Source of the DNA: Epiperipatus broadwayi | Lineage: Eukaryota; Animalia; Onychophora | DNA: 64,000 nt | Assembly (NCBI GenBank): GCA_028023455.1 | Contig: JAQFVV010000007.1 | Span: 682,001-746,000 of the forward strand | Direction of reading: 5' to 3' | Shown here: piece after piece, positions 31,027 to 53,921 of the stretch | Layout of the letters: every line of letters starts with the position of its first letter | Numbering within the stretch: position 1 is the stretch's first letter | Notes under the pieces: model-generated | Told to the model about the DNA's origin: nothing | The model's input: only the letters and a program-made list of their open reading frames with translations | The model's database searches: none | Position numbers and translations under genes: made by a program

Positions 31027-31173
31027 CTGCTGCTGCTCCTTCTGCTACTACTACTATAATGATGATGATGCTGACTACTACTACTGCTACTGCTGTTCCA
31101 CCACTACTACTTCTGCTGCTGCTACTGTTACTGCTACTTCTACTACTACTTCTACTATTACTAGTAGTAGTAG
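31027..31173. repeat. Tract 0: degenerate (TAC/TGC)n ending in an inverted (TAG)4
   Basis: Visible trinucleotide periodicity, abutting the 3' end of stub D. Confidence 0.95.
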
Positions 31174-32498
31174 TTTAAAAGATACTTTATATGATTAAAT
31201 TGTTGATACAATCATGTTCCACCATATTATGTGAATAATGTTTTACATACAATAAATTGTTCACATTGGCTATGCAGATATTTTACAAGATTATACTGAT
31301 AAATATTGGACATATTTTATAAAGAAGTTTCTACATATAAATGAAATTTTATAATTTTAAACATAAACATATGGTTATCAGTTTATCACCTTAAATTTTT
31401 CTATTCACAGTGACATGGGTAATGAAACCAGATTCCATGTAGCTCCAAAATTATCTGCAGGTGCAAGAGTATGATCTCTTAATTTTTGACAATTTGTTCA
31501 AGAATTTGGATTTCAAACCTTCATGATGAAAAATTAAAGACAAAATGGCATCTAATATCCCAAAGAGTGAAAAGAAGATAAGTAATAACTCTAATCAGTG
31601 GGAATAACCTTCTTTTAGTATTTTGAAAAATGAGGTTAATTGTTGTTATTTGAGAGTGAATAATTGTTGAGATAAGTTGATATGTTTGTAAACTAGAACA
31701 TGTATAGGAGAAATGGTTTCTTCATCTTTCCTACACATTCCACTTATTGCATCAATATTTGCATATGTCATTTTATTGGCTATAAATACATTTGTGGGTA
31801 GAGCTTTTAGATATATTTTAATTAAAAAAATCTAAATATTTAGACTCCAAGTGCTCAAATTTATACTTCCTTATAATGTATGTATTTGAAATAGTGTGTA
31901 ATGATGGGAGCACTTGTTGATTTGTTTCATTGATAATGTCATTAGCTTTCCAATGGGAGATTTTATGGGAGGGAAATTTAATTAGTGGCTTGGTATGTAT
32001 GGAAATACTTTCAAAAAGCTTTTTAATATATTTGTTTTCTATTGGTTGTGGTGTATCTGTGGGTGTAATTGGAAAAAAACATTCAATATTAGAAAAAAAC
32101 TTTATAAGCCATGTTCTCTCATTGATTGCTCTTTGTATATAAAAGGTTGAAATACTATGTAATAATAGACCATTATGCTTTAAAAAATTTGCATGTTTTA
32201 ATGCTTATAGACACTATCTTTTTCCCCCAAAATAAATTTGATGCATAATGAATTGATTTTATTTATAAATGAGTTGGTGTATTTTATGACTGGCACATAG
32301 TAGTTCATCATTGGAAAAGCTATCATGTTAATTAAAGATATCTTTGCATGTATAGAAAGATAAGCTCTTGAGAAGGAATTAATAATTTTATCTATAGAGT
32401 CTAAAGGCTGATTTTGAATCATTATTTGCATGTTATTATATCTTTTACTTAAAAGAAAACCTAAAAAACTCATAGAATGTGCTTTACAAATACAGGTA
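31174..32498 (-). mobile_element. Stub D: decayed 5'-truncated L1/Tx1-like copy
   Basis: LDSIDKIINSFSRAYLSIHAKISLINMIAFP is homologous to element A ORF2; LESKYLDFLIKIYLKALPTN near 31800; 3' end resembles that of family B. Confidence 0.85.
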
Positions 32499-32536
32499 AC
32501 TACTACTACTACTACTACAACTACTACTGCTACTAT

Positions 32537-32568
<32 letters not shown>

Positions 32569-32722
32569 AAATGACTACTATGACTAATACAGTGACTACT
32601 ATGACTACTACTTCTACTGCTACTACTACTGCTACTACTACTGCTACTACTACTGCTACTACTACTGCTACTACTGCTAATACTACTGCTACTACTACTG
32701 CTACTACTACTACTACTGCTAT

Positions 32723-32758
<36 letters not shown>

Positions 32759-50800: not shown

Positions 50801-51126
50801 GTTATTAAATTTAGAGTAAAAGAAGAATGATAGAGAATAATTAGACTCATATGCTGATCTAAGTATAAAATATTAAATGTTTGAAAAGGAGAATGATGAT
50901 GGATGAGAATCCCTACCCCAGCAGCAGCAATATCAGATGTTGAAAATTTACTGTATCCAAATTTACTAAAATAGAGTTCTGGATTAAATGTAGAATGTAC
51001 TGAGCATTTTGTCTCTGTAAATAAAAGGATATGGGGTGAGAATTGCCTTATCCAATTGCTAATTGCATATATTCGCTGGGTAGAGTTAATACCCCTTACA
51101 TTGACTGCTGTAATAAAAAGGCCCAT
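47860..51126 (-). pseudogene. Element B ORF2, fragmented
   Basis: ORFs 50575..51126, 49645..50034, 49356..49628, 49204..49407, 48509..49135 and 47787..48341 are successive homologs of element A ORF2. Confidence 0.92.
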
Positions 51127-51422
51127 ATTGTCAATTATATAAAATGGTGGGGAAAAGATATTTTATAGTCTATTATATAATGAATGGGACAACTATTATT
51201 AGTAAAAGTGTAGTAGGAATATGTTATATAGAAAACAAAAATTATAATAATACACCACTGTGAAAACAATGAAACTACCTTTGTAAGTAAAGTTCTATTG
51301 AGTTGGTTGTGCACATTTTTGTTCATAAACATGATAATAATTTTTACATTTGGGGTTAAAACCAAAAACTTATCCTGGTTTGAAAGTCTATAATTGTTAT
51401 TTATGTAACTCATCTTCATAGT

Positions 51423-53490
51423 CTATTTTAAATCAGAATTTCTTTGTTCTGTTAGTGAGCTGGTTGGCTTAAGTGAAAAGCTGTTAGAAATTTGAGCAGC
51501 ATTTGTATCCATGTCTAGGTTAACTTCTTCAGAATCTATGTCCTTTTTAGTTCTGCCTTTTTTTTGTGATTGTCTATTCCTTCGAAGTATTTGACTTGTT
51601 CTTGTAAAAGTTGAGAATTTCAAGAGTTTTTACAGGTCCAATGTAATGGGGTTGCATCTTCTGGGGCATTATTATCTTCATTTGAATCACTATATTTAGT
51701 TTTTTTGTGAATTGGCATGTATGGAGATTTCTTTTTATTTTCAGGGTTGCTTTTTTGCTTATCCATTGCATTTGATACTTCATTTTTATTTAACTTGTCA
51801 TTCCTTTTAATCTTTTTTACTTTTCTTAATTTTTGTCTACTGACTGCTACTTTTAAATTGTCATCATTTTCTGATGAGGTGTCAGTGCTAAACTTTTCAT
51901 TAGGGCTATCTTCAGGGCTGTCTTCTGTCTTTATATGCTGTGGAGTGTTAGATTCCTTTTTATTTTCAGGGTTGCTTTTTTGTTTATCCATTTCATTTAA
52001 GTCTTTATTTTGATTTAACTTGTCATTCCTTTTAATCTTTTTTACTTTTCTTAAACTTTGTCTACTGACTGCCACTTTAAAATTGTCATCATTTTCTGAT
52101 GAGGTGTCAGTGCTGTCCTTTTCATCAGGGCTATCTTCAGGGCTGTTTTCTGCTTGCATATGCTGTGGAGTATTAGATTCATAGATTGATACTTCCTCAA
52201 CTGTTCTTGCTTCTGATTCCATCCATTTATGTGAAATTTTTACTTCATCAATTGTTCTTGCTTCTGACTATGACTGTTCATGTGGAATATTATTAGGCAT
52301 TGGTGTCACTATGTCCTTGTGAGAACTTATGTTTGGAGTTGATATTTCATCCATTTGTTGATCACTTTTTATAATAGGTACATTTACAGGATTTTGAATT
52401 TTCCTTTGACAATATTTTTTGTTTAGCACATTGATGGTATTTTGTATTTTTAAATCCACAATTTAGGCAATATCTGTTAGGGCAATTCTGGATGAGGTGG
52501 TTCCTGGACTTGCAAGAGAAGCATTGTTAGGGTACTCCCCTGAAGGTGATTATCACAGGTGGGGCATCATGCGAAGTTGGAATGTCCATTGGCTGTACAT
52601 TTTTATTCAAAGTGAAGCTGAACAAGGCAATGTTACTTATTACTGGCTTTGTAGCTTTTTTTTCTAGTAGGTATCTCAAATTTGATACTTGTTCATATCT
52701 ATCAAGAATCTTTTGTAAGTCTTGATTGGTAAAGGTAACATGACAGTTTCTAATTTGGCCCTCTAGCCTCATCTGTTTGTATCAACATAGCAGACAATTT
52801 GTTGTTGATAACCTGAATATGTTTTTTGAAAAATTATTTTTTGTAAAACATTGTGAAATGCCAGGACATGGTATCTATTATTAGGATGGTATAACACTTT
52901 GTAAATCATTCCCCACACGTTTTTTTCTGAGAGAAACTCATAAAACTCATCTATGGGGAATTTCATTATAGAAATATTTAAGTCTGTCATAGATAAAATG
53001 AGTGACTTTTCATTTGTAAATTTTTGAAATGATTTAAAAATGATTGGGGGGATTGTTAGATTGAACTTATTTACTATATCTTGATATTCTTCAGGTTTTA
53101 ATGCATTACTAAATAGTGTAGATTCTGAATTTGCTTGATTAATCATCGTCATCAAAATTAAAAAAATCAGTTATATTTTCTTCATTAATTTGTAATAAAT
53201 TGTCTTCTTTATCTGTATTTTTTTAAAACATTTGCATAGCTACTTTTATTTGTAATCTCATTTCTTTTTGAGATAAGATCTTCAGATAGCCTGGAGCTTT
53301 CTAAATTTAAAGATTCTTCCGTTGTCTGAATTTCAGTAAAATTAGATTTACTTATCTTTTGACAATCTGATAAGGCTTTAGAACTTTTTTTAGAAATTCC
53401 TTCCATGCAATCCTTATCAGGATTAAAATTTATATTAGAATTTTCTAGAAATAAATCTTTTGTTGAACTATTTGAATTATTATTTAACAT
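51423..53490 (-). pseudogene. Element B ORF1, fragmented, with a 225-bp internal tandem duplication
   Basis: ORFs 53209..53490, 52769..53155, 52527..52772 and 51620..52222; SNTPQH...PENKK is repeated (52180-51956 and 51955-51731). Confidence 0.9.
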
Positions 53491-53687
53491 ATATTTAGAA
53501 AATCACTTATATTTTCACCAATTTTATAAGAAATTTGCTCTCAGTGAGTTTACCTTGAGTAGAAAAACTTCCTCTATTCAATGGTATAGGTTTTGTTATC
53601 CAATTCTCAGTAAAACTATGAAAAATTCTTCTTCAAAAATGAGGTGATGTAACACTTGACTTACTAAGAAAAGCGCCACCTAGTGGA

Positions 53688-53921
53688 CTACTACTACTAC
53701 TACTACTATTACTACTACTACTACAACTACTACTGCTACTACTACTGCTACTACTACTGCTACTACTGCTAATACTACTGCTACTACTACTGCTACTACT
53801 GCTGCTGCTGCTGCTACTGCTGCTCCTGCTCTGCTCCTGCTCCTGCTCTTACTCTTACTCTTACTCCGATTATGACTATGACTACAATTACTAACACTAC
53901 TAATATAATAATAATAATAAT
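53688..53921. repeat. Tract 8: (TAC/TGC/TCC)n grading into (TAA)n; outer edge of the array
   Basis: Direct reading. Confidence 0.95.

Follow-up and report, generated by a model that had tools for sequence, protein, structure and literature searches.

A window of 64,000 nucleotides from the onychophoran Epiperipatus broadwayi, by which we mean the whole stretch of DNA analysed here (C7:682001-746000 of the 5.6-Gb, 18,588-contig assembly that was searched), contains at 31023-53921 an array of eight copies of retrotransposons that lack long terminal repeats (non-LTR retrotransposons), all of them on the minus strand and all embedded in (TAG)n-derived repeat. The interpretation that we favour, and to which we assign a probability of roughly 85%, is that these copies belong to a lineage of the L1 group bearing an apurinic/apyrimidinic endonuclease (APE), that this lineage would use target-primed reverse transcription (TPRT) to integrate into (TAG)n.(CTA)n microsatellites, the TAG strand always being the one that receives its sense strand, and that the array in the window was probably enlarged further by duplication. 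Microsatellite-specific behaviour is itself already known for long interspersed nuclear elements (LINEs) that use other repeats; (TAG)n is new as a target, the element being of a known kind.

The copies in the array fall into four subfamilies, designated A, B, C and D, of which A and B share about 64-67% DNA identity, while C and D show 46-60% protein identity to A or B. Self-BLAST, BLAST against A and B and tblastn agree with the initial annotation of this DNA in finding eight minus-strand copies, none of whose bodies is interrupted by another (0/8 nested), and the extent that it gave to the array coincides with the edges at which unique DNA begins on either side (from ~31022 and ~53922). It had also described repeat on both flanks of each copy together with a (TAG)n tail, and this description holds at every 5' and 3' junction when these are read individually and analyzed with Tandem Repeats Finder (TRF), the plus strand carrying the repeat as (TAC/ACT/CTA)n. 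The 3' terminus of all array copies is TTT(T)AAA(A) followed by C, or by G in the D variant, with TAG units directly behind it, and 5' ends adjoin TAG units whether they are complete or truncated. Runs of at least four TAG/CTA units number 62 inside the array, in sense orientation, and 0 in the other 41 kb of the window. TRF places period-3 and period-6 ACT/TAC/CTA arrays (plus strand; (TAG)n on the minus strand) at 31074-31163, 32499-32799, 33841-34065 and 34712-35303, and further arrays of the same unit family at 36009-37818, 38663-38895, 39541-42037 and 53687-53848. The window as a whole is AT-rich (G+C ~26%), and the high-G+C, strongly skewed block at ~34-42 kb owes its composition to this simple repeat.

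A (TAG)n 3' tail alone is insufficient to show targeting, and 5' junctions were hence examined across the genome, where first-look searches for B yielded 121 candidate 5' ends and 400 candidate 3' ends. In 29/30 full-length B copies, on different contigs, the DNA directly upstream is a TAG-like tract, 30 to >500 bp long and always in sense orientation, and behind this tract stands the conserved 5' terminus ..AGTCCACTAGGTGGCGC. Complete A copies extend 212 bp beyond the window copy and begin (TAG)n/CCAAGATGGTG (locus L021; here and below the slash marks the junction); at exact A 5' termini, TAGTAG is found no more than 9 nt away in 6/7, in the constant phase TAG/CCAAGATGG. The A copy of the window is slightly 5'-truncated and yet adjoins TAG. 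A first candidate for the A 5' end (CCATTTG...) had been rejected, given that only the window copy among its 61 exact matches had TAG upstream and that the true terminus lies 212 bp further upstream. At the 3' side, junctions run into (TAG)n in 41/41 copies (30/30 of B and 11/11 readable ones of A), with the regular phase AAAAC/TAG. In the usage of Kojima, a LINE is microsatellite-specific when the same repeat occurs at >20% of its flanks (PMC4494074); here the repeat is found at both junctions of most copies and orientation is fixed, with TAG on the sense strand in all examined copies. These data strongly support specific, orientation-fixed insertion of the lineage into (TAG)n.(CTA)n microsatellites. 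The initial annotation had proposed such a sequence-specific lineage from the window alone, and its proposal extends well to the genome, since the tabulation of both flanks and orientation for the sampled A and B copies reveals neither a majority of non-repeat flanks nor mixed orientation.

Counts that do not depend on complete elements point in the same direction. The 20-mer TTTAAAAC(TAG)4 occurs 497 times in the genome, versus 9 occurrences of its reversed control, and when (TAA)4 stands in place of (TAG)4 behind this terminus the count is 43 versus 19 for the control, which is near background, though chance favours TAA in an AT-rich genome. Among the first 100 listed junctions, neighbouring pairs less than 10 kb apart lie on the same strand in 19/20 cases, typically at a spacing of ~6 kb, and runs of three or four junctions are seen on contigs C2, C16, C70, C129 and C181. 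Head-to-tail stacking is therefore a general trait of the lineage, and same-strand stacking is to be expected if the polarity of the repeat dictates orientation.

The surroundings of the B copies also bear on whether the association with TAG reflects insertion at all, or whether weakly specific insertion has been followed by survival and accumulation in TAG tracts (as with Drosophila Waldo-A/B near CA repeats), or else all tracts are outgrown tails. Of the 30 B copies, only three have an A or B 3' end immediately upstream, and a further four follow diverged relatives; about 22/30 sites have no family relative in the 1.5 kb upstream, and several have a TAG tract no longer than 20-90 bp, bordered by unique DNA or another microsatellite. 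Free-standing microsatellites are thus targets as well, and not older tails alone. That downstream tails are long and expanding, and that duplication also enlarges arrays, is what survival or outgrowth would lead one to expect, but neither readily explains TAG at the exact 5' terminus of 29/30 B copies and 6/7 full-length A copies in a single orientation, nor the many sites at which a short TAG stretch adjoins unique DNA with no older copy. Moreover, the absence of TAG runs from the window beyond the array makes chance landing negligible. We consider the weak-specificity alternative largely refuted, and very improbable in any of its forms.

Truncated copies address a different question, namely whether the TAG repeats are terminal 5' and 3' parts of the element instead of its target, as could be surmised from full-length copies that touch TAG at both ends. 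Twelve independent copies with a truncated 5' end were compared, four from the window and eight from other loci; seven adjoin TAG directly, and they do so at differing internal positions of the element, which refutes the notion of terminal repeats. The upstream tract is in addition variable, ranging across sites from 0 to >500 bp and often degenerate, and a 15-bp duplication containing a variant unit is found on both sides of A. The probability left to this alternative is accordingly minute.

The sequence TAGTAGTAGAGGTAG stands on both sides of A, at 47625-47639 and 42023-42037, and its first occurrence forms the final 15 nt of the tail of B, (TAG)8 AGG TAG, at 47625-47654. Since both flanks share the AGG variant unit, a 15-bp target-site duplication (TSD) is likely, and it would place the insertion of A 30 bp into the tail of B. 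Ten full-length B copies for which both flanks are available were searched for TSDs, and a similar match, marked by a TGG unit, appeared in the L017/L047 flank pair. Downstream tracts exceed upstream ones (median 210 vs 150 bp, minimum 90 vs 0-30; Mann-Whitney p = 0.003) and the tails of young A copies are perfect (TAG)n of at least 100 bp, so that the tail is probably lengthened during reverse transcription. In A-D, an AATAAA hexamer (TATAAA in C) lies 12-14 nt before the boundary between body and tail, and the 3' untranslated regions (UTRs) are otherwise alignable only at the terminus; the position of this hexamer suggests transcripts ending within the first few UAG units.

From these elements a plausible route of integration can be outlined. 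The endonuclease would nick the CTA strand of (TAG)n.(CTA)n, and the freed DNA 3' end would pair with a few UAG units at the 3' end of the RNA, where reverse transcription would start. The tail would then grow longer through repeated copying, and a second nick ~15 bp (five units) away would keep target on both sides of the new copy. As every insertion would renew the TAG tract and make it longer, copies that arrive later, from whichever subfamily, might settle beside earlier ones in the same orientation and so produce head-to-tail arrays. The initial annotation had described the locus as a self-reinforcing landing pad; the data lend partial support to this idea in so far as insertions would renew and enlarge their target, whereas part of the growth of the array in the window is to be credited to segmental duplication.

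The role given here to the endonuclease can be questioned. Targeting might instead proceed solely through the pairing of (UAG)n in the RNA with nicked or broken (CTA)n DNA, the endonuclease being as loosely specific as that of L1, which cuts at a T/A step. Such a step is present in each unit of the CTA strand, and the endonuclease of L1 (L1 EN) is the nearest solved structure to that of the lineage. Besides the AATAAA-like hexamer, the 3' sequence common to A-D amounts to a short terminus plus TAG units, and no conserved RNA structure was found in their 3' UTRs (z-scores -0.1 to +2.1). Set against this are the regular junction phases at both ends (TAG/CCAAGATGG in 6/6; AAAAC/TAG), a specificity that is nearly complete (29/30), and the contribution of the endonuclease to specificity in other site-specific APE LINEs (PMC4494074, PMC3812793). 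We therefore regard targeting by pairing alone as unlikely, albeit as an explanation that deserves serious weight.

Three further features of the repeat were noticed along the way. About one-sixth of the 3' junctions carry 1-13 TAC units before TAG, that is AAAA(CTA)n(TAG)n, an inverted repeat stretch that forms a palindrome around CTAG; sites of this kind are seen in the window at 32800-32823, 31164-31172 and 37780-37800 and elsewhere at loci L007, L009, L014, L025, L047, L069 and L071, and they may result from snap-back or template switching when reverse transcription starts. Old TAG tracts (36009-37818, 39541-42037 and many locus flanks) decay mainly to CAG, TGG, GAG and AGG, and these decayed tracts have a local G+C of 0.42-0.44 as compared with 26% for the genome, contrary to AT bias, and higher-order periods of 19 and 27. 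Finally, TAG tracts are frequently located beside (TAA)n or (ATT)n tracts (flanks of L002, L018, L026, L048, L053 and L058), and a historical link between TAG and (TAA)n/(ATT)n-type targets is possible.

The organization of the array in the window speaks to how it grew. In the sense direction, with all features on the minus strand, it opens with a degenerate (TAG)n tract at 53687-53921 (TRF periods 3, 9 and 12, and sequence reading), a target remnant directly 5' of element B. B itself (47655-53686) is full length, with decayed open reading frames (ORFs), starts ..CCACTAGGTGGCGC and ends ..TTCTTTAAAAC; it comprises ORF1 pieces at 52404-53155, APE at 50575-51126, reverse transcriptase (RT) at 48509-50370 and zf-RVT at 47787-48341. 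Within its ORF1 region lies a 225-bp tandem duplication (51725-52180) that may be private to this copy, as the alignments of other B copies break there. Next to the tail of B, which is its insertion site, lies element A (42038-47624), 5'-truncated by ~212 bp and ending GCTGTTTTAAAAC, with ORF1 in two pieces (46802-47446 and 45788-46732) bearing a CX2CX4HX4C knuckle, and with an ORF2 (45525-42296) that encodes APE, RT (YMDD) and zf-RVT and is disrupted by an in-frame stop near 45310 and a second break at 42673-42748. A is followed by a 2.5-kb degenerate (TAG)n-derived array (39541-42037; TRF 77% matches), which combines its tail with older target and holds the putative 15-bp TSD at 42023-42037.

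Beyond this point only truncated copies are found. B' copy 3 (38896-39540) begins at B position 5413 and its (TAG)n tail (38663-38895) is at the same time the 5' flank of D copy 2 (37817-38662), a 5'-truncated copy with 58% amino-acid identity to B in the zf-RVT region that ends TTTTAAAAG. A 1.8-kb degenerate (TAG)n-derived array (35951-37816) leads to B' copy 2 (35304-35950; truncation at B 5412, 3' edge ~35304), which a (TAG)n tract detected by TRF (34712-35303) separates from B' copy 1 (34066-34711; truncation at B 5413, 3' edge ~34066). The (TAG)n tail of the latter (33841-34065) is again the 5' flank of a D element, copy 1 (32824-33839), which has the same 5' truncation as D copy 2 and is a chimera, running as D from 33839 to 33249 and then as the 3' end of B to 32824. 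The chimera contains a 203-bp tandem duplication in its 3' UTR (32867-33273) and its 3' junction reads AAAAC(TAC)8(TAG)n. After another (TAG)n-derived tract (32498-32823), the 5'-truncated element C (31173-~32497), with 46-60% amino-acid identity to A across the end of RT and zf-RVT, ends TCTTTTAAAC, and its (TAC)3(TAG)n-derived tail (31023-31172) closes the array, with unique DNA beyond.

The truncation point at B 5412/5413 is thus common to all three B' copies, and both D copies are truncated at one 5' point, ..GTAGTAGTA/(C)AGACACACCCC... Their flanks also align in blocks, 33652-35303 with 38474-40085 and 35069-37818 with 38663-41394. Shared truncation points and aligned flanks together indicate that a D-tail-B'-array unit was duplicated, with one additional internal duplication of tail and B'. 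The eight copies of the initial annotation are hence not eight separate insertions: they can be traced to five or more independent insertions (B, A, B', D and C), two or three duplications and one D/B chimera, and unequal exchange or segmental duplication of the D-tail-B'-array block would have contributed part of the enlargement of the array. A comparable fusion is seen elsewhere in the genome, at locus L026 (G000:C6344), where a piece of A (positions 2158-2289) runs straight into B at position 4447; like the D/B chimera of the window, it suggests template switching or recombination among array members.

Taken to its extreme, the evidence for duplication could be read as satellite-like tandem amplification of one old insertion cluster, with no repeated retrotransposition. 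The recurrence of the D-tail-B'-array block, the extra internal copy of tail and B' and the identical truncation points are all in keeping with amplification, but only for the part of the array that they cover. A, B, C, D and B' differ in subfamily or truncation point, and the four subfamilies, at only 46-67% identity, make the origin of all eight copies from one block impossible. Furthermore, A has its own putative TSD within the tail of B, dispersed A copies elsewhere in the genome are 93-99% identical to the window copy and B-family members ~86-97%, and comparable arrays of ~6-kb units occur on many contigs. Amplification as the sole origin of the array is accordingly a highly improbable account, and insertion into TAG repeat, supplemented by local duplication, is the one that we retain.

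The lineage comprises five or more subfamilies, the A, B, C and D of the window being joined by E elsewhere in the genome. Fully open ORF2 was found in 0/12 sampled A copies. Subfamily E, at 64% amino-acid identity to A, has uninterrupted ORF2 frames of 1084-1085 amino acids in many copies, and further sister subfamilies with intact ORF2 stand at 62-67% amino-acid identity. In 5/5 checkable E copies, the ORF2 match is followed ~720 bp downstream by a TTTAAAAC(TAG)n junction, as in A, the target of E being deduced here by matching the coordinates of ORF2 hits and junctions among the contigs present in the listed junction set. A-family sequence is also found in contigs from four public runs with two organism labels. 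The lineage is abundant and, judging by copies that are 97-99% identical and by the uninterrupted E frames, recently active. With regard to abundance, the 18,588 contigs of the assembly equal 3 x 6,196, and large contigs recur from numbers 1, 6197 and 12393 on; three sets (haplotypes or versions) may make up the assembly, in which case copy counts are not per haploid genome.

Several observations weigh against the interpretation advanced here, or at least temper it. Non-repeat DNA is found at the 5' junction of 5/12 5'-truncated copies, and upstream TAG is missing from 1/30 full-length B and 1/7 A copies. The samples consist of the best-scoring 30-40 matches per search, in an assembly that may contain several haplotypes. 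TSDs are unreadable in pure repeat (eight flank pairs), leaving only two informative cases, and endonuclease specificity and tail-primer pairing are not separable on sequence evidence. The tree drawn from the DNA of B 3' ends has a star-like shape and does not group the three B' copies in a supported clade, and the argument for duplication therefore rests on common breakpoints and flanks. Lastly, the RNA nature of the two small runs that contain A-family pieces is only a guess.

The affiliation of the lineage can be established at the level of the L1 group. Structurally, it has two ORFs, a defined 5' end, frequent 5' truncation at many positions and (TAG)n replacing poly(A), and the combination of APE and RT with such truncations identifies it as an APE-type non-LTR retrotransposon, that is, a LINE. 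ORF2 carries an N-terminal APE, RT and a C-terminal CCHC motif, with RNase H absent. Its Pfam matches are PF03372 (Exo_endo_phos, 6.7e-10, in the B ORF at 50575-51126), PF14529 (7.3e-7), PF00078 (RVT_1, 2.7e-29) and zf-RVT (2.8e-6). In A, RVT_1 and the endonuclease domains fall in the ORF at 42748-45306 and zf-RVT in that at 42296-42673. The zf-RVT score is 28.3 bits in B (cut-off 27.5) and 23.4 bits in A, and the catalytic columns GDFN, SDH and YMDD are conserved in the alignment. ORF1 has a weak CCHC knuckle, CX2CX4HX4C, and no match to Transposase_22 even at E<=5. The protein is remote from anything sampled: the best ORF2 match among 1.84 billion representative proteins, and the sole one below 1e-30, has 26% identity (E 6e-32), and a word-based protein search gave a best E of 8e-12. 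Among solved structures, the nearest to RT is human L1 ORF2p (4e-16), R2 proteins following at 8e-12 and weaker, and the nearest to the endonuclease is L1 EN (1.4e-5); the endonuclease structures of R1Bm and TRAS1 both went unmatched at E<=1.

A tree built from 70 RT sequences puts the family on a branch of length 2.25, sister to a supported clade of 51 L1-like rows in which fish, Bombina and Anolis sequences are joined by plant L1-like ones and by environmental ones that bear zf-RVT, and which includes no named Tx1 reference; a Vitis protein bearing the Tx1 name was excluded as an anchor, its label being an automatic one on a plant L1-like sequence. The family and the L1-like rows together form a clade with support 85 from which I-like and R1-like rows are excluded. 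The long branch and a skewed amino-acid composition make the exact position in the tree unsafe, and it is the presence of zf-RVT, the absence of RNase H and the proximity of both RT and endonuclease to L1 structures that place the lineage in the L1 group. Judging from its sequence, it is a very divergent member of this group (L1/Tx1/Proto1), in which L1 and Tx1 are not separable with the rows sampled. The label of L1/Tx1-like given initially is thus sustained only at the group level, given that the branch of its RT is very long and falls outside every L1-like sequence sampled. Nor does it resemble the L1 clade proper, from which it differs by an ORF1 without Transposase_22 and an RT outside the plant and vertebrate L1-like rows, although this placement is uncertain. 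We entertain as a tentative possibility, more doubtful than not, that it forms a previously unsampled clade branching deep in the L1 group, with five or more TAG-specific subfamilies, long self-made tails and telomere-like, orientation-fixed arrays at hundreds of internal sites.

The remainder of the window holds some unrelated repeats. A perfect (AT)45 microsatellite is located at 54404-54494, ~500 bp outside the edge of the array. At 11448-12674, on the minus strand, lies a fragment of another non-LTR element, covering the region of RT and zf-RVT with 24-29% amino-acid identity to A and B and unaccompanied by TAG repeat. LINE-unrelated dispersed or inverted repeats at 68-86% identity were detected at 3013-6036, 6144-6452/18570-18878, 12733-13062/18940-19268 and 4648-5694/26978-27453.

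Site-specific LINEs are natural models of targeted, RNA-mediated DNA insertion, and few APE-type lineages with simple-repeat targets (ACAY, AC, TC, TTC and TTCC) are available, to which the TAG lineage adds one. Several diverged subfamilies that share one target make up a comparative set with which to ask whether specificity stems from endonuclease loops or from the pairing of RNA tail and primer. The lineage illustrates as well the creation and enlargement of microsatellite-plus-LINE arrays inside chromosomes, a process of relevance for the annotation and assembly of a large AT-rich genome.

Known microsatellite targets of non-LTR elements include ACAY (Waldo), AC (Mino), TC (Kibi), TTC (Koshi) and TAA (Dong) (PMC3812793), (TTCC)n/(TTTC)n, which are preferred by crocodilian Tx1 families (PMC4494074), and TG for Togen, together with unspecified microsatellites for some HERO families (PMC4640811). 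No description of a LINE specific for TAG, CTA, GTA, TAC, ACT or AGT repeats was found in the searchable literature, a scope that does not extend to the Repbase and Dfam catalogues, and the statement in the initial annotation that no TAG-specific family was known stands within that scope. The closest parallels are Kibi and Koshi (Tx1, teleost fish) and the crocodilian Tx1 families, which are likewise APE-type, microsatellite-specific members of the L1 group with two ORFs and repeat on both sides (PMC4494074, PMC3812793). The lineage of the window differs from them in its (TAG)n target and in an RT that falls outside the sampled L1-like clade, in a tree without Tx1 references. Waldo, with (ACAY)n, and Mino, with (AC)n, also combine APE with microsatellite specificity (PMC3812793); unlike these R1-clade elements, the lineage has an L1-type zf-RVT and an endonuclease that matches L1 EN and not R1Bm or TRAS1 at E<=1. 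Microsatellite specificity is likewise found in two non-LTR elements of other groups, Dong (R4 clade, (TAA)n) and Togen (NeSL-related, (TG)n) (PMC3812793, PMC4640811). Dong too has a trinucleotide target, which a single transition separates from TAG. Dong and Togen encode a restriction-like endonuclease downstream of RT, whereas the window lineage has an N-terminal APE domain. The Drosophila I factor, a member of the I clade with an RNase H domain, makes a (TAA)n 3' tail at retrotransposition in place of poly(A), and to our knowledge no need for a (TAA)n target has been reported for it; it resembles the TAG lineage in the trinucleotide repeat of its 3' end and differs from it in the RNase H that the latter lacks. 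In terms of genomic organization, the nearest analogues are TRAS and SART, in telomeric TTAGG repeats, and HeT-A and TART, which similarly undergo orientation-fixed insertion into a short tandem repeat and form head-to-tail arrays. These elements occupy chromosome ends, whereas the lineage described here is found inside long contigs, at hundreds of sites, and carries a trinucleotide repeat as its tail instead of poly(A).

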